64,000 nt of DNA, from contig CBFFRP010000058.1 in the NCBI GenBank assembly GCA_965644295.1, positions 124,001 through 188,000 of the forward strand, in the 5' to 3' direction. The DNA comes from Paraphysomonas bandaiensis. Taxonomy: Eukaryota > Protista > Chrysophyceae. The notes below the pieces were generated by a model. The model made no database searches, was not told the origin of the DNA, and saw nothing but the letters and a program-made list of their open reading frames with translations. A program made the translations under genes and the position numbers. The stretch's first letter is position 1. Every line of letters begins with the position of its first letter. Below are positions 18,649-36,873 of the stretch, piece after piece.

Positions 18649-21545
18649 TTAAAAGCTATTGCGAAGTCTTTCTCTAGCGTCTTCAACAGTGGCTCCTGGC
18701 AGAAAACAATTCATAATAGCCTCAAGCTTAACCCGTTTCATCGGTTTGGTGACCACCGCATCAGCACCCACATCTAAAAACTCTTGCACATCATCATCCA
18801 TGGCATTACCTGTGACCGCAATGATGCAACCCAGAAATCCTTTTTCACGAATAATTCGAGTGGCTTCGATACCATTCTGTTTTACCAAAATATCATTCGA
18901 TTGTAAACATTTATACATCAGCTGCCTCACCATTACTGGCATCGTGTAATCCATGAATATAAGATGTAAATCGCGATTTTCCTGGTACATTAAAGTTGCC
19001 TCTAACCCGTTTACTGCAGCCAATGATTTCACTTTGAATTGGGTAAGTAGCCGCTGGAGCATTTTCAAATTCGACGGTGTGTCTATTATACAAAAGTTAG
19101 AATAGTAACACGAGAACGGAATATCTACGCACCATCAACACACATCACACGCCAAGACTGCCTCTCAGGTAGTAACCCACGGTCTGCGGAGGCTATACTG
19201 CATGAATCTTCGTAAATGGGAGGCTCTGTCCATATAATATATTATCCACGATATAATTATCGTACTAAACCAACCTGGGTCACATGTTGCATTTATATTC
19301 CTCGAATTTACATCCTCAAAGCCATTCTTTATGTTGGAATCTGTGGTCATAGGTACTTCATTGGCAATTATTTGAGTGGTTGGTTTAGCAGGTACAATGC
19401 TCCTACTTTCAATCGCTGACATGGAATGCGACCCCCTATCCTCTAAGTATAGATAGTGTAAGCAGACAGGATTGAAGCAATAAGTACTTTTCCAAAATAC
19501 GCTCTAACACATGATACAATACAACAACGGAGTTTACAACAGTGCAAGTTTAACGTTCATAATCAATAATACAATACTAGCAGAGAATTTAACATTTTGT
19601 CATAGGCAACACCTGAAAGTGTGCATCCCTCTTTGATACAGCTCAGAGGAGTCACATCCGCATGGGCTGCTTGATGACGTAAGCTCCATGACAATTCCGA
19701 ACTTTCGTTTGTAAGGACAACATCGGTGTGTGTTGACCTGTTCGAATTGCACCTATTACTGTTGCCGTCTTGCTGCGGTTTTGACAAGCGTGAGTACACT
19801 ACATCTTTCTCGTGGGCATGAACTTGTATAGCACGAAATCGATTTTTTTTTAAAGGCCTACGCAATATTTCCCGGTCATCAACTCTACGCAGATTCAAGT
19901 TTATATTGAAAATTAAACAACCATTTGAAGAGGTTGATAGGTCAACCGTTCCGTTGTGCAGGGCAATTATTTCCTTTGCTATCACTGGAGATAAACCCGA
20001 GAAGCAATCACCAAAGATATCACCGATGAGTAGTGTACTATAAGGTTCAAAACAACAGCGTAGCTCATCCAGTGTCTTGCATGGGTGCTCCGTAGAAAAA
20101 GTTATAAAAATTCCAGTAGTTTCTTCGCTGGATGGACCTCCTTTACAGCTTCCTACTTCAGATGATACGTGAATAGAGATTTTGCTTCCTGCTTTCGAGC
20201 ATGTAATGGCGCTGTTTAACAAATTTACAAGCGCTCTCGTAAGGTAACAACGATCAGCTAGAACTATCTCTGGGAATACCGCCAACGGTGAGAGCTTCAA
20301 CTCAACGTTTCGAGCTGATATTATGCTAGATAATTGGCCGACGACATCTGTCCACACGTCTCTCATAACAACTTCGTGATGGTTCAATAGAAGATTACCC
20401 TCTTCAATTTGCTGCATCGTCAAATAGTCATTGAGTGCCTTTTCCAAGTAGGTAGTGGCGACCACCATGGTTTCAAAAGCTTCTCGTTTCGAGGCTGCAA
20501 CGTCTTCCTCTGACCTATCAGTGCGTAGAGAAGGCTCTGAAACAACATAATCCAAACTCATCGCAAGGGCATTCAGAGGGATACGAGTTTCATATAACAT
20601 GTATCGCACTAATGACCTCAAATGAGAATTGGCTTTGAAATGTATCTCTTGTTCTTCACTAACCGCATGCAAAATAGGTACATGTGCGTCGATGACAGTG
20701 AAGGCCATTAATCCTTTCCCAACAACATCAATCACTAAATAACTGACTAAAGCAGTGGTTGGAGTTAATGCACTGTTCGCCGCAAGGACGTAAACCACGA
20801 AAGATAAAGTCATTGTCACAATCACTACTACAAACAGATCCCGCAAAAGATATAGGCGGAACACTTCGTCATTGAATGCCTTATGACCAGCAGTCATATT
20901 CTTGTCGCACTTTTCCATGCTGACTTTGATGGAAAAATATACGAAGTACAGTGCAAACAAGAAGGAAATCAATCCCACGACAAAAAGAATTATTGTCCCG
21001 TAAATATCAATGCCATGAAATTGCATGGAAAACCCTGTTGCAATGGTCAAAAATATAGACATGATAGCCTTGATATCATCAGACGAGGGGGCCCTCCCAA
21101 ATTCAGGAACCAGTACCGTATACATCAATAACGGGACAGTGATAATCCATGAACACCAATTAGCCGCATAGGTAACAGCACTGTACATAGAATTATTACA
21201 GTAAATGAGTGTTATTGTTTTGATTTCTTACCCCCAGTTATCGATGCATATATTCTGATCAATGAGGGAGATTATATACGATATAACAGTGATAAGATTA
21301 ACAGTTAATATACTCATATTAATGTTCGAATATTTATCTGTATTACTGTATAAGAGATATCTTCTTAATTGACCAAGAATGATCATGCTTATCGCCCCTA
21401 TAGCGGCTGTAAGAGGCGTATTCATCCTATTAACATGTGTGTAATCATATCGACATATAGGTAGATCTGATATATGGATCAGAGTAGTTAATATGACGAA
21501 TAGACATACACAGATGATAGGAATATATACAGATGTGAATGACAT
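18649..21545 (-). CDS. Microbial rhodopsin-histidine kinase-receiver fusion, copy 1 (His->Tyr pseudokinase); spliced
   Basis: Exon 1 21545..21232, intron 21231..21181. Helix C YAANWCSWIITVPLLMYT, helix G YLVIDVVGKGL (retinal Lys), H-box RYMLYETRIPLN, degenerate HATPase, REC VMCVD|DTPSNLKML..FMDYTMP..VTGN..TKP. Confidence 0.85.
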
Positions 21546-22101
21546 TGTTTCAATTAAAGAATATTGTTCTATCTGTTATTCATAGTATGATATGATGATA
21601 TAATGATAGACTTATTGTAATAGTAGTCACTATACACTGTAAATTCATAGTAAATATATGAATTCATAGTAAATCATATCAACTTTTTCACTTCTTTTTA
21701 TGAAGTGTGTTCTTATTGAGTGGCCCTCCAACCTGCCTACTAAGCTAATTTTGACACTTCCACGTCAAATATTTTTATCTCAATACAACCACCTTTTTTT
21801 TTTGGAAAGATCTTGACATGTCTGTACAATTGCTGGTAGTACGATATATTGTACGTTTGTATGTAGATAGAAACGAGTATAACCCATAATAAAAACCCAT
21901 ACTTTCGACGTCATGTACGTACACTGTACATATGAACACACATCAATTTCATGGACAGTAAAGTCCATATATATATATATACATACGACTATATATATAT
22001 ACATGGTTATAGAATTGAGAATATAACGAGATTATTATTCATAATCAACATCCATTAAATAAGAATTCTCTATCATAATAATATCATTACAATCATTCAT
22101 T

Positions 22102-24944
22102 ATGAAACATATACATATTAAAGAGCATCCTTTACTACCATCACGTCCATTAATTATAACAACTAGTGCTATTATACTTTATATTATAATTACTATCCTA
22201 ATACATCATAAAGATTCATATATATGTCATCAAAATTATAAATATGCTGAATGGACTAATTCAGCTGTCATGACTGCTATTGGAGCCTTTAGTTTCTCAT
22301 GTATTATACAATTAAGACGACTTATATATGTTGCTATCTATGAAAATATTGATAGTTCATTCTATATTGTATTCAGTACATTAATTATTAATATTCTTGG
22401 TGGATTTTCTGTTGCACTTGAAAGAATTGATTCGAATCTTTGTGAAGATCAATTTGGGTAAGTCTATAGGAAAATATTTATAGATTCTTTCTTCATATCT
22501 TTTACAGTGTAGTTACCTATGCGGCTAATTGGTGTTCATGGATTATCACTGTCCCGTTATTGATGTATACGGTACTGGTTCCTGAATTTGGGAGGGCCCC
22601 TTCGTCTGATGATATCAAGGCTATCGTATATATATTTTTGACCATTGCAACAGGGTTTTCCATGCAATTTCATGGCATTGATATTTACGGGACAGTAATT
22701 CTTTTTGTTATTAGCTCGTTTACCTTCGTGCTTGCCCTCCACTACATGCTTGTGTCTTACAAGGTGAGTGAGAAGCATTACAATGAGAAGGTAGATTCCA
22801 AAGGACAAGAGTGCAGAGAAGAGAAACATCGATTGGAGTTGAAGTACAAATTGTCGACCACTCTCGCTGTGGTAATGTGTCTCTTTCCAATTGTATACCT
22901 ATTGGCAATATTTGGCGTATTAAATCCAAACACTACTTTGATGAGCTATTTAGTACTGGATGTCGTTGCCAAAGGCTTCGTTGCCTTCACTGCCATGGAC
23001 TCGCACTTATCTGTTTTTTATTCAGTTAGAAGTGAGCTAGAGACACAAATCAAAGCAAATTACCGCAAGCGAGCATTCATGAGGTATATGTTTCATGAGA
23101 CTCGCATCCCATTGAATGCTCTTGCGATGAGTTTGGATTACTTTGTTTCTGAGTCAGCTATTTCTCAGCGCTTATCTGACCATACCAATACTGCATCGAA
23201 GGAAGCACTTGGTACCATGGTGGTCGCAACGGATTATTTGGAAGAGGCGCTCAATAGTTATCTGACCATGCAACAGATTGAAGAGGGTACCCTAGAAATG
23301 AACCTTCAGGAAGTGAATATGAGGGAAGTATGGGCTGATGTTGTTGATATTCTTTCGTGTAAGCTACAACCCAAAGGAATTAGTGTTGATCTAGCTTCCA
23401 ACTCAGTCTTCCCTGTTCAAGTGTTGGCCGATCGCCGCCAAATTACTTACGCAATCAAATGTCTTTTGAACTGTGCGATTTCCCGGTCCAGCTTTGGAAA
23501 TGTATTATCTGTTTCTTTCAGTAGTTTGCGTGGTACTCCGAGAAACAACGTTGTGAACCGTACAAGTCAGGATAAATATACTGTAGAAATTTCTTTTCAA
23601 GACTCCGGCAGTACGTTATCTGAAAAAGAGGTAGAACATTTTTTCGACCCGTATGGAGCGCTGTTTACGGGCGATATGCTGGGAGAGAGTGGCTCGGGTT
23701 TATCTCCTGCAATCGCTTATGAAATTATAGCTCTCCATAACGGTATTGTGGAACTCTCTGTCCCAAGTAGTGGTGGATTGGCGTATTCGATTAAGTTAAA
23801 TCTTCTTACTGTGGAAGAAAGAGTCGTAGCCGACAAACCCTCGAAGCGACGTGCGCCTCATTACTTTGACACGTCAAGCATGCGCAATACTTCTCGCGTC
23901 GGAGTTGCTCCAACGGCGTGCAAAACAGAGAAAACTGCGCGTATGGCTTCCAACGCGACCTCTTTGGAGGGTGAACCGGATGTCAAATTTCAATATACTG
24001 ATGAAACGCACAAATTTGAAGACACTGATATGAGTAACGTCATGTCACCTAGTATTACGACAGCTCAACATTCAGACCCAGATGATTCAAAGACGAAAAG
24101 AAGTGAGGACCTAGAAGAGGATAGTGCTAAAATGATTCCAGCCGATCAAACTACAAACATGTCCGTTTTGTCTATTGAAAAATCAAGAAATCCATCTACA
24201 TATGAGATGGTTTCTGCAGTCGAGGAGACTGTTGCAACGAATCCGGATGCATTGGGAGTTCATTTAGAAACAGGTGCCCCATGTTGATGATATTCCCACA
24301 CGATGCGTAGATAATATATGGCGTGCAGATGACATGACAGATTTGGTTAAAGATCACGGTACGAGAGTAGTAAGCACTGAAGGTGAAAGTAGAGCAGAAG
24401 GTATGAACAGTCGATTGTTGCCAGAAAAATCTGAGATGGGGGTAATGTGTGTCGATGGTAAGCTCGTAGCCCTTATAACACCAAGATGACTCAATAAAAT
24501 ACTCCAGACACACCGTCGAATTTGAAAATGCTCCAGCGTCTACTTACCCAATTCAAAGTGAAATCGTTGGCTGCAGTAAACGGGTTAGAGGCAACTTTAA
24601 TGTACCAGGAAAATCGTGATTTACATCTTATATTCATGGATTACACGATGCCAGTAATGGTGAGGCAGCTGATGTATAAATGTTTACAATCGAATGATAT
24701 TTTGGTAAAACAGAATGGTATCGAAGCCACTCGAATTATTCGTGAAAAAGGATTTCTGGGTTGCATCATTGCGGTCACAGGTAATGCCATGGATGATGAT
24801 GTGCAAGAGTTTTTAGATGTGGGTGCTGATGCGGTGGTCACCAAACCAATGAAACGGGTTAAGCTTGAGGCCATTCTTCAATGCTTTGTTATTGGGGAGA
24901 CTATAGACGTAGCTCGACAGAAATTACGTTGCATGCAAAAATAA
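22102..24944 (+). CDS. Microbial rhodopsin-histidine kinase-receiver fusion, copy 2; spliced
   Basis: Exon 1 22102..22457, intron 22458..22507. Helix C YAANWCSWIITVPLLMYT, helix F MCLFPIVY, helix G YLVLDVVAKGF, H-box RYMFHETRIPLN, G1 QDSG, G2 GSGLSPAIAYEIIALHNG. REC with introns 24458..24507 and 24660..24713. Confidence 0.9.
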
Positions 24945-28507: not shown

Positions 28508-31500
28508 TTAATTATCCTCAATCGCTGCATCATCACCACTGTATTCATCCACGGAATTCGCCTTTTCATCGCATCCATCATTCATTCCACTGTTCATGGA
28601 AACCACAGAAAATCGTTCACTTGCATCTAATGTACCAACGCATGCAGCATGCTCTCGAAGAGTAGACACAGAGCAATAAAACGAAGTAGGGTCATACACT
28701 TCTCCTGTATCACTATCATTCGATAAGTTTCCTCCGCGCAACCAAGTGAACTTAGAGCGGTCCAATTCACTTCCTATAACTTCACTACTGAAATCGGATG
28801 CCCATTTCACGGGGAGTGGAAACGCTGCGCTCTTCAGAGGAGGCCGGTTCGGTCGGTATATAGATGTGTTTACACCAGGTGCAGATGGGATTACCTCTAG
28901 GGATTCCCCAAGTAGTGGGGGACACTCTAGAATCTCTTCACTGAACATAGTATCACTGCGAATTCCCACTCCTCGCACAGGAGGGCGTGGTATCTCCAAT
29001 GCAACTAGCGGGGGACGGCTAGATACTCCACATACGGCAGCACTGATCATGTTTGTACGCAAATGCTCGGAATTTTCCCTAAGATTCAATAGCCCTGTGC
29101 GCCTTCGTCTATTCTTTTTCGTCGGTATTTTACGAGTGGTATTTTCTATGCCTTCATCATCATCGTCGTCATCCTCTGCGAGTTTTTGCAGTGTTTGGCG
29201 TCCTTTCTCTACATGCGCCATAGTTTTCGCGGCGTGTAACTCTGCAGCCTGACGGGCAGCCTCCAGTTCCACCCTCTCTTCCTCTGCCCTCTCCTCAGCC
29301 AATATAGCACGCCTGCTCTTGGGGGGATCGAAATAGGAATCTGCTTTTTCCAGATGTAACGGTGCTGGAGGAGTAGGAAACATAGGGTAATTTTTCGTGA
29401 ATCGCTTCATGACTACTTTGGTATCAGATGCAGATATGAAAGACTCGCCGATATCTAATATATCATTCCCTCCCTCAGTGCCATGCGGAAAGAAGCCCCT
29501 AGAAAGTAACTCGAGAGTGAACGCCGACACAAGGCTCTCCAAATCGGCAGCAGATGTTGTAATCAATGGAATATCCATATCATTTACGACAACTCTTAGG
29601 AGCCTAGCTTCAGTAGAAACATCAGGATACTCTTTCGCAGAAGTGACAGTACATGACTGTATATCATACAGAGGGGCGTGAAATATCAATAACCACTCAT
29701 CATTCGTGAGTAAATATAAGCCATTTCCGGACACACATATGAGCACTTTGACCAGGCCTTCACCCTCTTTATCAAAAAGCCCTTCCGCGAAGTGACCACC
29801 CGCAAGAGGCCACGCCATTACATACGTTATATAAGCACTTTTCATCATGTACCGAAATCGCGGAGAAGAAAGAGACACATTTAACTGTTTCGCCATAAGT
29901 TGAAATTGTGACATGCATTTTAAGATGTCTTCTTGTAATTCAGGGGTGGACTGAATTCCCAAGGATGCGATGATTTCATACAAGAACGAAAGCTCGTGGT
30001 TGGAAATATTCGCTGGGTTCATTGGCTCCCCGGACCATAATATAGAGTCTTCTTCATCATTCTCTTTTCCGTCATCATTTTCGTCATCTAAAACCTCATT
30101 CCGTTTACCCCAGCCCAATATGGATGACCGTGCACCTTCTCCAGTTGACTCAGAAAAAAGTGACCCGCGTCTAGGACTTGTGTCAATGTCTGCACGAGTC
30201 CTGGATGATTTGTAGCTTGATCGCCGCAAAGAAGGACGGACGCTAGATTCTACGTTATTCATAACAGAACTATGACCTCCTCCCCATCGAATTCCTTCGT
30301 TTTCAGTCCATGATAATGTCAGTTGCAAAGCAATGAGGTACGCCAAAGCGTCATCAGTCATTGCATATAACTGCGAGTTGACGTACCGACTCTCCTCAGC
30401 GAAGAGAATGTCTATGCGTACGTGATCAACCGGTAAATCTCGATTCGCTTGCAACCAATTCGTCCACAGCCGGGTTGTCCCAACAATATCTCGTTCAGGA
30501 GCCATGTCGTGAAATAAATCAATGTGGTCAATCAGTTCCTCTGAGCATAAGAGCAAGCGCCGTCGTAACTGAAGTCGACGACACTGCTTCGAATTATTCT
30601 GCAACATATCCCAAAGAAAGTCATGCTGCCATTGTATGACGTAAGCTTCGTCCGGTTGCACTGGTATGGAATGAATGTCATTTTCCGTTGCATGTGATTC
30701 GGATTCATAAAACCAAAACCCTCGAAATATTTTCGATACCACATCAGCGCGCAATTTTGAGTCCGATATTTTGGTTGATAAACTCCTATCCAGATTGGTT
30801 TGGGAGGCTCTGGGTTCATTAAATTGACAGTCATCCGACACACTCTTCAAATCCATCACGGAATCGTAACCGCAACCAACAATTTTTTCAAACAAAGTAA
30901 GCAACACCGAAAATAGGGTGTTGATGTCACCAAAACAAATCGACATCTTATATACAGACCCGGTTAGCAGAGATATCTCCAATTGCATGGGTGTACGGCG
31001 TAATATATCCTCCATCAATGAGGCATCAGCCATTGATACTTCTGATCGGAATCCGTTTTCTGCTTGGATTTCACATTCATTCCAAGCAAGAGCCTTGCTA
31101 ACGTAGTGGACCACACGTGATACGGCAACCACAGAGCCTTCTAAATCAGTATCACGAATCGCTACCCGTGAGCGTCTGGGAGCATCGGGTGTTGACCCAC
31201 ATTCTGTCATAATGGCCTGGGATACAAAAGCTCTCAGATAAGGCATAAACCCTACCGAAGGAGGAAAACAATGAAGGTACACCGCCAACAATGACCAACC
31301 ACGAATGCGACTAGACTCTTTTGGGTTCCGAGTCAACTGTTTCAAAATTTGGATATACAGTTCGTCTCTAAGAATGGGAGAAGATATACCTAGACTAACC
31401 ATTTCGTTCGCCAATGCATACTCATCTGAGGTATTGCTCAAAACACGACTACCTACTAGCGACTGAATCAACCTATCGCCCATGACTACCTGTAAAGCAC

Positions 31501-34500
31501 GGAACATTTCTCGTGCTAATTCATCTTCACTCTTTTGCAGATTTAGCAGTGACTTCTGCAGATTGTCCGACGTGAACGACAAAATACTAACGGCGTCTAA
31601 ACCAGTAGTCTTTCGACGGCCCATAAATCCTTTCTTTATTGTGGTTTCAAACGGTCTCAAGTTTTCGAACTTTTCAAGTGCATATTGCGACGATGTAGTG
31701 CGCGCACTAAGCTCTCTGCCACCCACATCAAAAGTCGATTGTGTACGTCGAAGAGGTGACAAGCTACCCCCGGTAAGTGATTTATCTCTCCCAGTCGTAG
31801 TACGAGTACTGTTCTCCCTCATGGAAGCAGCAATTAGATTTCTAGCCAACTGCATTGGTTCTGTTTCAACGAAATATTGCATACTACCCTCAAGGGTTTG
31901 TTCAACGTAGCGCGCAGCATTTTTCATCAATTCACCATCAAATAAAAGAGATTGCGCTACCATCATACCACTGTGTTGTAGCAGTGTTGCCACCAATACC
32001 TGAATCTCACATAAGACCAGTAATGTGCAAAAATACATAGGGTCCATTGCAATGATAACGCGCACACACACCTTTTTCTCTTTGATACCGAGGCGCTTGA
32101 CATCAAACCTTTGTATTCCAGCCAGAGCTCGAGAGAAGGCACCTTCATCCAGTGAATACAAACACCCCCTTGCGCGCAATATAGAAAGTTCGCTCTCGGG
32201 CTTCTCAGAGAGCAATTGAGCTGTCTTGTACATTGGCAGGGATGGGTCAAGACGACACCGCTTCGCTACGTACCGTTGTTAGATAATCTTGAATAGAAGA
32301 TATATAGGAACCGAAACATTGTAAATGCAATCAGATACGGCGCATGCACCGCTAAAGTATTTCAAACAGAACCCAGATGATAGTCCTACCTGTCCGCAAT
32401 AATTCCTGCAGCTGTCCTCTGGGAATAATCATGCACGCATTTCTCAGCTCCACTTTCAACATCCGATGCTGCATACGCAAAAGAATCGCCTTGGCTTGTG
32501 CAATGAGGTCGCTGTCCAATACGACGTCGAGTTTGTTTGCCTTCTCCAATATTTCCGCACACATCTTCTCTGATTGCTCTGCAATAGCACCAGCAAGAAC
32601 TTCGTCCAAACTGTCTTTCTGCATAATTTTAACCTACATCCCCAAGTAATAGAGTTAACCACACTCAAACAGAACACTAAATAATGACCATACTAATCAC
32701 ACCTGTTTACGAGCCTCGAACAACAACTCTGGATCAATATGGGATAGGTCACGACCTTCTTGTAGTTCGAAGCAGTGAGAGTGCCCTCCAGTGTCATCAT
32801 TAATAATACGGACGGCACCTCCACCCACCCTCACGCAACCTTTCTTCTCACCCCCGGCCTTAGTATAGTATGATATTTGCAGGCCCTCCAAAACAAAGTA
32901 ACGTTGACGCCAATTTCGTAGAATGCCCTCTTTCCCTCGCGCAGCTTTCTCCAAGGTACCAACTTTGTATACTTCACGTGTTTCTCCGCTGGAATCAACG
33001 CCCATGCTACATGCGAGCTCAAGAGCTTCTACCCACTCTCTCATTGCATCTGCTGATGGCGCACTCATTACCAGCCGCCCTGTCCCACGACCAGACAACA
33101 CCTCTTCCAGTTTCTCTAAATTACGTTCGTCGATAAGCCGCAAGATTTCTTCCTCTTGACTCGCCAGGCCAGCTATTCGTTTGAGATGCTTCTCAATCAT
33201 CTGGATAGGACCATATAGAGCTGTGTGAATACCCATTACCAAACGTTTATCTCAGTAAGAATTTCCAATACCAGATACTTCGTGCAGATTCAATGCTTTG
33301 ATACTTCGCAGAAGCTGCATGGCATCAATCGCCTTCACTTCTTGACCTCTCTTCATATCATCCGTCATAGCAAACAACTTGCTCTTAACAACTTCCTCCT
33401 AGTAAAATTAATACATAGTCAGTGACTCCGCGTGATACCAACTCGATAAGATAATAACATCCACAATCCCTTACTTGGATTATTTTATTTCGAGTGTCGT
33501 ACAAAGCATGTGCAGTATCATGTATAAAGGGGTGGTCCCAACCCACTCGGTGTGCCTCCACAAGAACACTATCAAGTTGGGCTCTATTTCCTTCTCGTAA
33601 ACTATTCAGGAGATGCGTCAATAACTCAGAGGCACTCGAGCTAATACTATATATTCTATCGATCACCATGCTTACGTGCTCATCGTAATAGTTCAAATAT
33701 GCTGCTTCTGCAAAAGCATCTTCTAATTCTTCAAGTACACCACTATCTAAAGCGTCTATCAATCGATTCTTGACTGCATTACAGTCTTCTAGTAGCTTTT
33801 GCGCAACCTGTCTCTGTGATTTAGGAAGTAGTCGCGTAGATTCGGGTGATGCAATTGCGCTTGATAAGGCGGACAGATCGCGGGATATCATGGTGTTAGA
33901 TATATATGACCGTTGCTTGATCCCTATATACATCAAAACTTACATTTTACAACAACTAAGTGCATATAACAAGCAAACATCGTCGGATTCTTTCCGCATC
34001 ACATTCAGAACGAATGTCAAACACACATGAACTTAGAAGTCGTCAAATAACTACATGAAAATACCTACCTTCAAGTTCATGTGTGTAGTCAGGGTCCTCT
34101 TGCAAAGCCCATCGAACCAAATACTCTCTTAACTCAACCGCCATCAGAGTCTCCGGTCCAGAGTAACCCAACCTTCCACAGTCCATGAGAAAGGCTTCAA
34201 CTATATTCACATCTCCTGGAGCAGTTGCCATAGCCTCCAAGTTTTCGGCATCCTTCACCAGGCCCATTATTTCGGATAACAGCTGGTCAGCTAACTGCAG
34301 TGCCAGTCCCCCAGGTATTTGGTTCTGCTTAACATGGTCAACGAATGACTCCACGTCCTCCATGTCCCGATTCAGCATTGCATCGCATATATGTCTACGC
34401 ACGCCGACATTGTGGAATATACCATCATCATCAATCGCATCTTCCAGTACCTCATTCATGTCATCACCAGTACCTACAAAAGCCTGTTGCCAGAACTGAC

Positions 34501-36873
34501 CAGACTGAATCGGAATTCTACTATCGTGTTGAAGTTGTCGAATCGCCAATATCAGTTTGCTATCGATATTTTCAGTTGTTTCGTCAATAGAACCCTGGGT
34601 ATAAACAATGCTCTCAGCTTCCTCTGCAGTGTCATTCCGGGATAGCTCCAACCTCTCATTCCATTCATCATCAATATCCTCATCATCTTCATCGTACCAC
34701 ATATCCTCGGCTTCTTCTGGGACCACTGCAGCAGAATCTTCTTCTCCAACTGCATTCGACCTAGAACGCTCCACAGGACTTCTATCATTATCTCGTTTGC
34801 TGTCTTCTTCATCATCCAAATTATTGTCATCAACATTATCCAAAACAGCAGCCATTGGAAACAACGGAGGAATGTATTCGCCCAATATGCCATCCCCGCC
34901 AGACCCCCCTCCTTTAATGTGGCAACTAAACGACGCAAGCCCTCCAGTTTTTACAAGAGCATCCCCCCGTTGGATATACACAGTCCGCAATCCCAGTTTT
35001 CTAAGCATTGGACTAGACACGCGAGACAACTCTTGAAGCATTTGAACAATACGTTCTCCAGAAGGTAATTGCTGAAAGGTAGATGAGGACCGTTCTACTG
35101 TACGATTTTTCGAACTAGTAAACGCCGGCCTAGCTTGAAACGAAAGCTTTTGATTAATCTGAATATGCCGTATAAAAGCCTCTTGTTGGGCGGGTGTAGG
35201 GTCCATAGCAGAAAACATAATGAAGCAGGAATCAATTTCGTCGACATCTGATGCAGAGAGCATTTGTAATTGCCGTGGGTCAGCACGCAATACCTTTGCT
35301 AATCCCTCCATTATGTCATGTACAGATTCCATATACGGCATTAGCTGAGCACGAATACACACCAGATTTACATTTTTAACCTGGTGTTTAGTTGAGTCAT
35401 CCTCTTGTTGATCAGGGATTTCAGGGGCTCGAGCGGAGGCATCATACAGTGATATTGAAGAAGTGTCGACACTAACACTAGTGGATGCAATACGTCTATA
35501 TAGCGACAAACGAGGCACTGAAGAATAGGGCGTTGCATAAGCCATAGCCATTCGCATGGTTCTGTGTCCAATCGTTACTGGTGTATGTTCCATAAGCAAT
35601 CCCCCAAGATGCACACTGAGAGCGCTTTTATTAGGGTTTTGCATTGTCCTACTAAAGTCACTCGTTTGACGGTCAACAACTGCTCCAATGCCAAATTTGT
35701 TTTGATGGTGTGTCATTGCGTCCATTAATAGAGAAATTGAAGTATCGTCAGCAAAATTTCCGATGACGAACAAGCTATGCAAAGATTTACATCTGCCAGA
35801 AGGTATAGACGTTAGAAGATTCTCAAATACATTCGACAAACTTACCCTACAAGTGAATGTGCTAGCTCTTTAAACCCTTTCGACTCTATTCCACAATAAC
35901 TAAGATTAATATTTTCAATACAAGTAGGTTCATTGGTAATCAGCAAACATGCTAACGAAGCAGCTGCATTGCCGATAGTGTTATACGACAGGTTCAATGA
36001 CGCCAGCTTCGTTCCAGGAGCACCGATATGAAAAGCTAACGAACGAGCTGATTCAGAAGTCAAGCGGTTACGTGATAAGTCTAGGTGGGTTAAGTTTGAT
36101 AAACTTGCAAGTGATTTAGCCAGGGCTGTGATGCCGGTGTCCCCAATATAATTGCTGGACAAATCCAACAGTACCATCTGAGAGCAGTTTGGTAGCATTG
36201 CACTGAGCTCCACAACCCCACCACACGTAATATAGTTACTAGTCAGCGATAGCGACTGCAATTGAGGCGTAAAAGTAAGTAAGGATGAGAGCAATGGTAC
36301 ATGATGGTCGGTAATTTGAGCATTCTCAAAGTGCACTGCACGTAATACAGTCCCATTGCTTTCATTAAGTTTACACACCATGACGAGAGATCCCAGACTT
36401 GGAATTGTCATCTTTATATTCTCTAATACGATAGACGACTGATCAGCTAATGCAGCGTGGAAAATCGATTTTGAAGGAACAGCTCCACACTCAATGCATG
36501 AGTACAAATAATGCTGTATATGTAGTGCTTTAAGAATTTCATCCATCCATATTTGACGAATATCATCTTCATCACAACCAAGACGTAATCTGTATGATTT
36601 GTCTTGAGATATAAGCTCTACAATAAATGGATATAGAGGTTTATCAATCATAATATTATGTGTAATAGGTACTTCTGAACCAACATAACATACTCGTATA
36701 TTACCACCAAATATCCATCCACCATCATTAGCAGATAATAATAATTTTGTAATGTTTTTTTCTAATGGTTCTTCACGAAACCATCTTAAACCACAATATG
36801 GAAATAATATAAAATAATAAGATTGAAATCTTTGTTTAGATAATTCATTTTCAATATATAAATATCCTTGCAT
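28508..36873 (-). CDS. Large multidomain protein: PH - LRR - helical region - (permuted) PH - MyTH4 - FERM-like; no myosin motor; spliced
   Basis: N-terminal PH (QGYLYI..WMDEILKA), RNI-like LRRs (LDLSSNYIGDTG, LDLSRNRLT, LNLSYNTIG), PH (NWRQRYFVL), MyTH4 (LRDELYIQILKQLTRNP..RGWSLLAVYLHCFPPS) and FERM-C-like (WPLAGGHF..ICVSGNGLYLL). The ORFs are joined by GT-AG introns. Confidence 0.8.

Follow-up and report, generated by a model that had tools for sequence, protein, structure and literature searches.

What do two divergently transcribed genes with rhodopsin-like membrane domains encode in a colourless chrysophyte, and can both of their products act as kinases? The two genes, here called A and B, lie in a 64,000-nucleotide stretch of the Paraphysomonas bandaiensis genome (assembly GCA_965644295.1, contig CBFFRP010000058.1, positions 124,001–188,000 of the forward strand). 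This whole stretch is referred to as the window, and coordinates are positions within it. A preliminary description had proposed that each gene encodes a membrane domain with rhodopsin hallmarks, a histidine kinase (HisKA/HATPase), a linker and a receiver (REC) in a single chain. This fusion was recovered in both genes by Pfam profiles, run on exon pieces and on the transcript protein P0001. Judged by sequence, A, B and a third copy, C, are enzyme rhodopsins of the histidine kinase rhodopsin (HKR) type, with a rhodopsin domain related to that of other rhodopsin-kinase fusions. The reading that we prefer, and to which we give an even chance, is that A and B are nuclear, intron-bearing HKR-type paralogs, of which B would be a light-regulated relay and A its pseudokinase partner. 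Light sensing, retinal binding and phosphotransfer by A and B are predicted functions.

Gene structure and expression

Gene A (840 amino acids, six exons) is encoded on the minus strand, from an ATG at 21545 to a stop codon at 18649, and gene B (877 amino acids, five exons) on the plus strand, from an ATG at 22102 to a stop codon at 24944. The genes are arranged head to head with a 556-bp spacer between the two ATGs, as the preliminary description had it, and their products are 53% identical over the whole length. The splice sites were fixed by RNA contigs aligned to the window and by transcript proteins of Paraphysomonas from MMETSP1103. Three sources supplied the RNA contigs: X1, an RNA set from culture; X2, a metatranscriptome of marine origin; and X3, a further study. 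DNA-type contigs were available from a DNA run (X12). The features of the locus are as follows.

21232..21545, minus strand: gene A exon 1; start codon, the extra N-terminal transmembrane helix (TM0), helices A and B; RNA joint 21180/21232 in X1; homologous first exons in B, C and the environmental relative L005
19613..21180, minus strand: gene A exon 2; helices C–G, degenerate DHp/CA, start of the linker
21150-21152, 20727-20729, 20715-20717 and 20592-20594, minus strand: gene A residues S115, D256, K260 (Schiff-base Lys) and Tyr301, all in exon 2
19275..19442, minus strand: gene A exon 3; linker; joints 19442/19613 (170-nt intron) and 19225/19275 (49 nt) in X1, X2 and X3; P0004 matches
19133..19225, minus strand: gene A exon 4; end of the linker and first REC strand to V-M-C-V-D; joint 19082/19133 in X2; P0004/P0010 match
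18931..19082, minus strand: gene A exon 5; REC, with the phospho-acceptor Asp759 at 18949-18951
18649..18876, minus strand: gene A exon 6; remaining REC, C-terminal tail, stop codon
21546..22101, no strand: divergent spacer; 556 bp, AT-rich, presumed bidirectional promoter region, weak short repeats only
22102..22457, plus strand: gene B exon 1; start codon, TM0, helices A and B; RNA joint 22457/22508 in X1; 54% identity to gene C exon 1
22508..24273, plus strand: gene B exon 2; helices C–G, DHp, CA domain, linker
22527-22529, 22536-22538, 22959-22961, 22971-22973 and 23094-23096, plus strand: gene B residues N126, S129, D270, Lys274 and His315, all in exon 2
24329..24457, plus strand: gene B exon 3; end of the linker and first REC strand; joint 24273/24329 (55-nt intron) in X1 and X2; P0001 matches
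24508..24659, plus strand: gene B exon 4; REC, with Asp795 at 24639-24641; RNA contig pieces end at 24457 and begin at 24507
24714..24944, plus strand: gene B exon 5; remaining REC, tail, stop codon; joint 24659/24714 in X1, X2 and X3

Genes A and B are transcribed and spliced. Spliced joints were observed at eight introns (four of five in gene A and all four in gene B) in up to three RNA data sets, and were absent from the collinear DNA-type contigs of X12. The transcripts join the membrane, kinase and receiver exons, which was the RNA check that the preliminary description had called for. They terminate at the same stop codons with no cyclase or other domain after the receiver, in agreement with its statement that the receiver is terminal. 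The introns are all of the GT..AG type and 49–55 nt long, with the single exception of the 170-nt intron in gene A. The 54-nt, in-frame REC intron of gene A (18877-18930) has no RNA joint of its own and is supported by P0004/P0010 and by its identity to the gene B intron. The short open reading frame at 19165-19422 corresponds to exon 3 of gene A, in a different frame from the REC exon in the three-frame translation. An acceptor at 24311 for gene B intron 2 was ruled out, the transcript and the RNA contigs giving 24329.

The MMETSP1103 proteins (97–99% identity) also identified the host as a colourless chrysophyte, in line with the non-green protist of the preliminary description. P0001 (863 amino acids, taxid 36769) is 99% identical to gene B exon 2, the part searched, and P0004/P0010 (842 amino acids) are 96.7% identical to gene A. 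Both P0001 and P0010 carry an A-type exon 1 at the N-terminus and a B-type C-terminal tail. Trans-splicing was set aside as the source of these mixed ends; in one X1 contig, exon 1 of B itself is joined to exon 2. The ends are probably assembly chimeras formed through near-identical tracts, and an uncritical use of these proteins as references would be unwise.

In the divergent spacer, the X12 contigs break at 21734-21739, with unrelated loose ends, and show indels of 4–11 nt at 21734-21739 and in the 21792-21989 region. The spacer is structurally variable between strains, so that the head-to-head order is not strictly established for the X12 strain.

The membrane domain has an eight-helix rhodopsin fold

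The Pfam curated cut-offs are 24.6 bits for Bac_rhodopsin (PF01036), 30.2 bits for Response_reg and 26.4 bits for HATPase_c. Bac_rhodopsin matched the unspliced exon-2 pieces with 31.3 bits (A) and 35.9 bits (B), and full-length P0001 with 57.9 bits, covering profile positions 8–220 of 224 and residues 48–270. Since the match begins at residue 48, one additional N-terminal helix is left over. The Pfam scan at E<=0.01 did not list Bac_rhodopsin for P0010. The hallmarks named in the preliminary description are present as stated (WxxTxPLL in helix C, DVVAK/DVVGK in helix G); the helix C motif reads W-I-I-T-V-P-L-L and the helix G motif D-V-V-A-K in B and D-V-V-G-K in A.

The rhodopsin domain was modelled by AlphaFold2 from an alignment of 74 sequences, yielding a confident structure (pLDDT 92.7, pTM 0.89) of eight helices and a beta hairpin between helices B and C. 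A helix at residues 3–25 precedes helices A–G, and helix G continues unbroken to residue 299. The model bears out the earlier suggestion that exon 1 supplies three helices for a total of about eight; exon 1 is conserved in the three genes of this genome, in L005 and in the Mallomonas protein P0028. We conclude that the predicted topology is that of the eight-helix type Ib enzyme rhodopsins (TM0 and helices A–G). In type Ib rhodopsins, the extra N-terminal helix places both termini in the cytosol.

Structural comparison agreed with this assignment. Foldseek ranked 7d7q first among PDB structures (TMq 0.74 over 303 columns including TM0); this is the eight-helix rhodopsin phosphodiesterase of Salpingoeca, linker included. 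Halorhodopsins, sensory rhodopsin II and channelrhodopsins (ChR2) came next. All 50 listed PDB matches were microbial rhodopsins, and 201 matches were found at E<=0.001. An ESM Atlas model gave TM scores of 0.73/0.87 against bacteriorhodopsin (BR); a search of the protein atlas by features returned no usable match. By sequence alone, all solved rhodopsins were remote, the best being ChRmine with 27 bits. The helix G Asp and Lys (K274 in B, K260 in A) align with the D/K pair of ChRmine. The fold and the placement of the Lys, which the preliminary description had proposed to check, are as it expected.

Residues of the retinal pocket were read from the ChRmine alignment and from the 74-sequence alignment, which holds eight family members and 66 more distant relatives.

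BR R82 position: Asn in the family
BR D85 position: Ser/Thr in 8/8 family members
BR W86 and P91 positions: invariant
BR D96 position: Thr/Ile/Ser in the family
BR W182 position: Met/Leu in the family, Glu in one
BR D212 position: Asp in 6/8 family members
BR K216 position: Lys in 8/8 family members and in 58/66 distant relatives

The BR W189 position is Tyr, and the substitutions at W182 and W189 are common to the entire HKR-like group. The 66 distant relatives show the reverse counterion layout: 61 have Glu at the D85 position, and the D212 position is Ser, Gly or Asn. Among the HKRs of green algae and Guillardia, nearly all keep D212, and position 85 is Met (Cop5/HKR1), Gln, Leu, Cys, Glu or Ser (MpuRh2) (PMC7693036). 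The predicted Ser85/Asp212 pattern is unusual yet precedented, and resembles the single-counterion layout of HKR1, a bistable UV/blue receptor.

An invariant pair of cysteines is located in the TM0-A loop and in the B-C hairpin (Cys42 at 22225-22227 and Cys114 at 22441-22443 in gene B), in the same columns in A, C, L005 and P0028. The pair may form an extracellular disulfide that ties the extra helix to the opsin core.

Kinase and receiver domains

Helix G runs directly into the DHp helix, which is followed by the CA domain, a disordered linker of about 120–185 residues and the terminal receiver. On raw exon pieces, HisKA and HATPase_c were detected below their cut-offs. On full-length P0001, where the preliminary description had suggested a profile search, Bac_rhodopsin, Response_reg and HisKA (29.6 bits) exceeded the cut-offs and HATPase_c fell just below. 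The DHp-CA region of gene B matched solved kinases by sequence (phmmer, E 1e-8), and its model (pLDDT 89) displayed a DHp hairpin and a Bergerat-fold domain that matched solved kinase cores at 1e-14. The best structural matches were RetS, ZraS, GacS, CusS, HK853 and DivL. The H-box reads F-H-E-x-R-I-P-L-N in B, C, P0002, P0003, P0005 and P0025.

Response_reg scored about 48 bits on the raw exon pieces of A and B and 74.1 bits on P0001. A, B and C each have the motifs V-D-D, F-M-D, A-V-T-G and T-K-P, indicating that the receivers carry the acidic pocket, the phospho-acceptor Asp, the Thr and the Lys.

Gene A has lost the residues for autophosphorylation

The phospho-acceptor His is replaced by Tyr301 in gene A, where the box reads L-Y-E-T-R-I-P-L-N. 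The same Tyr is found in the independent transcript proteins P0004 and P0010, and no variant of its codon occurs among the listed differences of the DNA and RNA contigs (14 differences are unlisted). The G1 box is lost (T-E-H-P-C), the G2 region reads F-S-G-L-S with Phe for the first Gly, and Phe also replaces the helix-F Pro (BR P186). With Tyr in place of His and no G1 box, gene A cannot be expected to autophosphorylate canonically and is classified as a pseudokinase by its residues. The pair is likely a kinase and a pseudokinase partner, in a clade whose ATP-binding domain is non-canonical.

Precedents for kinase-dead partners are bacterial. DivL of Caulobacter is a pseudokinase whose phospho-acceptor His has been replaced by Tyr, and RetS of Pseudomonas is kinase-like, has no autokinase activity and blocks GacS by heterodimerizing with it. 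Both were among the fold matches of gene B. Gene A resembles them in its retained DHp/CA scaffold, and DivL also in the His-to-Tyr replacement, but their sensor domains are unrelated. In Cr2c-Cyclop1 of Chlamydomonas, the heterodimer of wild type and H352F is inactive (PMC6284317), which suggests that a partner without the His could be a negative regulator.

Two tracts of gene conversion connect A and B

Two inverted repeats connect the genes.

18662..19084, no strand: conversion tract 1, gene A arm; REC exons and intron; inverted repeat of 423 nt, 93%
24506..24928, no strand: conversion tract 1, gene B arm; partner of 18662..19084
20920..21185, no strand: conversion tract 2, gene A arm; helices C-D and the start of E; inverted repeat of 266 nt, 88%
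22503..22768, no strand: conversion tract 2, gene B arm; partner of 20920..21185

A and B differ little at synonymous sites in helices C-D (synonymous divergence, dS, 0.20) and in the receiver (dS 0.14), but are saturated (dS >1.4) across exon 1, helices E-G, DHp, CA and the linker. The 54-nt REC introns of A and B are identical at 54 of 54 positions. Between A and C, and between B and C, synonymous divergence is saturated everywhere. We conclude from the low dS, confined to these stretches, that two recent conversion tracts have homogenized half of the retinal pocket and the receiver, with the kinase cores remaining apart.

A third copy and relatives in other organisms

The third paralog, gene C, is located on another contig (C433) of the 62.6-Mb genome. 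It has five exons and is 67% identical to the B-type protein P0001 over helices C-G. Gene C is unpaired, with a coiled-coil gene upstream; L005 is likewise unpaired, with a UCH protease gene upstream. Since both are unpaired yet fused, the fusion is a family trait, and the head-to-head pair is specific to this lineage. In a second environmental relative, L006, receiver exons are found downstream of the kinase. The environmental homologs stop at V-L-C-V-D-G, the same phase-1 intron site as in A and B, from which we conclude that the family is eukaryotic.

A, B and C form one clade in the tree (100/99 support). Their order of duplication was not settled by this tree, as approximately unbiased tests gave p values of 0.49 and 0.29. 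The branch of A (1.14) is two to three times longer than those of B (0.32) and C (0.50), a mark of its faster evolution.

A search with the rhodopsin domain only, against 1.84 billion representatives, gave 175 hits. In a Pfam scan of 20 long hits, HisKA and/or HATPase_c followed the rhodopsin in 18, a receiver was present in nine and a cyclase in none. A local tally of 173 proteins (hits and cluster-mates of the family) counted 100 with a kinase directly behind the rhodopsin. The named relatives are few and all from chrysophytes: Mallomonas annulata (rhodopsin, histidine kinase and receiver) and Mallomonas marina (RGS and rhodopsin). The nearest named relatives of the rhodopsin domain are P0074/P0085 of M. 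annulata, together with environmental proteins such as P0044, P0050 and P0064. These are like A and B in fusion order and terminal receiver, but differ in having canonical N, G1 and G2 boxes (HATPase_c 60–86 bits), Glu at the D85 position and Ser/Gly/Asn at the D212 position. A homolog search with residues 1–310 of P0074 recovered two Mallomonas proteins and no named HKR, and no related loci were found in metagenome contigs searched with the family alignment.

The closest full eight-helix match outside the family was P0028 (M. marina, MMETSP1167; 832 amino acids; residues 13–162 and 252–535). It has an RGS domain (40.9 bits) N-terminal to the rhodopsin and no kinase, and represents an RGS-rhodopsin fusion in another chrysophyte.

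Chromophore and phosphorelay genes elsewhere in the genome

The same genome encodes two HPt proteins (C214:69710-69940 and C146:48861-49094) and one RPE65-family carotenoid oxygenase (contig C133, 295.9 bits). Contig C64 has an unassigned SQS_PSY fragment, and the match to lycopene cyclase in the genome is weak and spans 45 residues. The best SQS_PSY match, on contig C394, was rejected as a carotenoid enzyme; it is a squalene synthase with an IPP-isomerase-like piece. The frame (L008:1629-3494, minus strand, 621 amino acids) contains squalene synthase (TIGR01559, 411 bits) behind an N-terminal piece similar to the C-terminal half of IPP isomerase, and may be a fusion of two isoprenoid enzymes.

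A proposed light-regulated relay and the alternatives

In the reading that we prefer, retinal would be bound at Lys274 in B and Lys260 in A, and would probably be derived from dietary carotenoids via the RPE65-family oxygenase. With Ser at D85 and Asn at R82, the helix-G Asp (BR D212 position) would be the sole carboxylate near the retinal. A light-driven movement of helix G would be transmitted to the DHp helix and alter the phosphorylation state of His315 in B, and likewise in C; by analogy with the green-algal 2c-Cyclop, light would lower His phosphorylation. From the His, the phosphoryl group would pass to the Asp of the protein's own receiver and then to either of the two HPt proteins. 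Gene A could not perform the first step, having Tyr for His and having lost G1 and part of G2, and would instead act on B as a modulating pseudokinase partner in the manner of DivL or RetS, for instance by heterodimerizing with it or by offering another receiver. Thus, the earlier proposal of a photoreceptor pair feeding a phosphorelay is retained in part: the receiver fusions and the HPt proteins are consistent with a relay, which stays a prediction, as does co-regulation through the shared spacer, but A and B are not equivalent kinases, and a catalytic residue is missing throughout their clade.

That residue is the first of several observations that weigh against our reading. The N-box Asn, the Mg-binding residue of histidine kinases, is missing in 7/7 family sequences and kept in 35/44 relatives. 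The second Gly of G1 is also missing in 7/7, and G2 is G-L-S and not G-L-G in 7/7, the third Gly being gone. The HATPase_c score of gene B is 25.2–25.8 bits as compared to the cut-off of 26.4 (P0001, 25.2), and the domain was not detected in gene A by Pfam. In the family, the fold is present and the full set of N, G1, F and G2 boxes of a catalytic HATPase_c domain is not. As these changes are shared and conserved in the whole clade, kinase activity is uncertain for all members, gene B included; gene B may not autophosphorylate, and we give its predicted kinase activity about even odds. The pocket has Met at W182, and the genome search gave no clear pathway for carotenoid synthesis. Heterodimerization of A and B has no support: a complex prediction for the two DHp domains (score 0.27, mark 0.34) was evidence neither way. 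The strain changes of gene A, considered below, fit fairly relaxed constraint. Finally, the comparison with Cr-HKR1, Ot-HKR and 2c-Cyclop covered the residue patterns in PMC7693036, and common descent with them is putative.

The box changes lead directly to an alternative that we consider unlikely, namely that the whole chrysophyte clade has lost autokinase activity. The CA domain would then be a regulatory pseudo-ATPase, and the proteins light-controlled modules for phosphotransfer, phosphatase activity or scaffolding, with their His and Asp served by other kinases. That the substitutions are conserved and not random points to a function that has changed but is under selection; the clade is separated from the relatives with canonical boxes with 100/99 support. 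The low HATPase_c scores and the top structural match, RetS, which has no autokinase activity, point in the same direction. However, H-E-x-R-I-P-L-N is invariant in 6/7 sequences, the CA fold is confidently predicted, and B, P0002, P0003 and P0025 retain the D-x-G of G1. The residue at H+4 is Ile, as compared to the Thr/Asn typical of phosphatase-competent HisKA kinases.

The degeneration of gene A could also mean that it is a decaying duplicate, an expressed but functionless pseudogene whose similarity to B is a by-product of conversion between inverted repeats. This would accommodate the loss of the His, of G1 and of the helix-F Pro, the long branch, and the absence of any A-type ortholog outside this species in protein searches. 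It would also accommodate the differences between this genome and the X1/X12 strain, which at listed coding sites, synonymous ones included, number 24 in A and six in B, about fourfold more; those of A are 15 nonsynonymous and nine synonymous, and its 170-nt intron alone has six listed differences. Nevertheless, we regard this explanation as improbable. The saturated synonymous divergence from B marks A as an old duplicate, yet its 840 codons are open and its five introns intact, with no stop codon or frameshift. The nonsynonymous measure pN (0.24–0.43) is well below the synonymous pS (0.65–0.79) in every unconverted domain. Gene A retains the Schiff-base Lys, Asp256, the helix C W and P and all receiver residues, and it is spliced and expressed both in culture and in a marine metatranscriptome.

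A further, similarly improbable, possibility is that A and B form an obligate asymmetric heterodimer, a light-gated kinase and pseudokinase with which a colourless predator would sense UV/blue light. Conversion would keep the opsin halves and the receivers matched while the kinase cores diverge, and the CA domain without an N-box would handle ATP or the phosphoryl group non-canonically. The conversion tracts have this distribution. If true, an obligate heterodimer would be a new signalling logic for enzyme rhodopsins.

Least probable of all is an opsin domain that binds no retinal and either anchors the protein in the membrane or senses a stimulus that is not light. The odd pocket, with Asn, Ser, Met and Tyr at the R82, D85, W182 and W189 positions, would fit, as would a colourless host with no carotenoid synthesis genes identified in the genome search. 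Against it, the Lys is invariant in the family and kept in 58/66 relatives, W86 and P91 are invariant, the W182/W189 substitutions extend to the whole HKR-like group, characterized HKRs also lack D85 (PMC7693036), and a carotenoid-cleavage oxygenase gene is present, for which prey can supply carotenoids.

Neighbouring genes

Elsewhere in the window, a 1241-aa open frame with a MyTH4 domain (70.5 bits) is located at 28508-32233 on the minus strand, and an LRR protein is encoded at 35842-36873. No two-component link was found for these neighbouring MyTH4 and LRR genes.

Comparison with known enzyme rhodopsins

In the literature searched, we found no description of HKRs in stramenopiles; the reports concerned green algae, Klebsormidium, Guillardia and Thecamonas. 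To our knowledge, HKRs have been characterized in green algae only, and their physiological role is still unclear.

The closest parallels are HKRs without an active cyclase: Ot-HKR/OtRh1 of Ostreococcus, Cop7, Cop11 and Cop12 of Chlamydomonas, and the predicted GtRh4-8 of Guillardia. Like A and B, these have rhodopsin, histidine kinase, linker and receiver in a single chain, keep the Schiff-base Lys and the Asp at the D212 position, and are non-acidic at D96 (PMC7693036). A and B differ from them in their host, a colourless phagotrophic chrysophyte, in Ser/Thr at D85 (Glu in Ot-HKR) and Asn at R82, in the missing N-box Asn, and in that one paralog is a predicted pseudokinase.

HKR1/Cop5 of Chlamydomonas, a bistable UV-A/blue receptor, shares with A and B the eight-helix type Ib topology, the Asp at D212 (D239) and the lack of a carboxylate at D85, which is Met (M113) in Cop5 and Ser here (PMC6284317, PMC7693036). 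In Cop5, however, a degenerate cyclase and SMC_N and SAM domains follow the receiver, whereas the receiver is terminal in A and B. Cr2c-Cyclop1 (Cop6) also has eight transmembrane helices, a kinase directly behind the opsin and a long unstructured spacer before the receiver; light inhibits its phosphorelay, which depends on the His, the Gly of the ATP lid and the receiver Asp (PMC6284317). It differs from A and B in its guanylyl cyclase output, in Gln at 85 and Asn at 212, and in kinase boxes canonical enough for classical mutagenesis behaviour. The rhodopsin phosphodiesterase of Salpingoeca rosetta (7d7q, 7cj3) is similar in its membrane fold, including TM0 and the long helix G/linker, but is only 16% identical, has a phosphodiesterase output and carries E164/D292 at the counterion positions.

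The locus thus belongs to an expressed three-gene HKR family in a non-photosynthetic, phagotrophic chrysophyte, which fits the recent interest in light sensing by heterotrophic flagellates. For questions of mechanism, the family provides informative natural variants: a predicted single helix-G counterion (Ser at D85, Asn at R82), a conserved ATP-binding domain without an N-box, and a linked pair of a putative kinase and a pseudokinase in which conversion has homogenized only the receiver and the retinal-pocket half. At 840–877 amino acids, as compared to 1,500–2,500 for the algal HKRs, the proteins may lend themselves more readily to expression and to optogenetic use as two-component switches.

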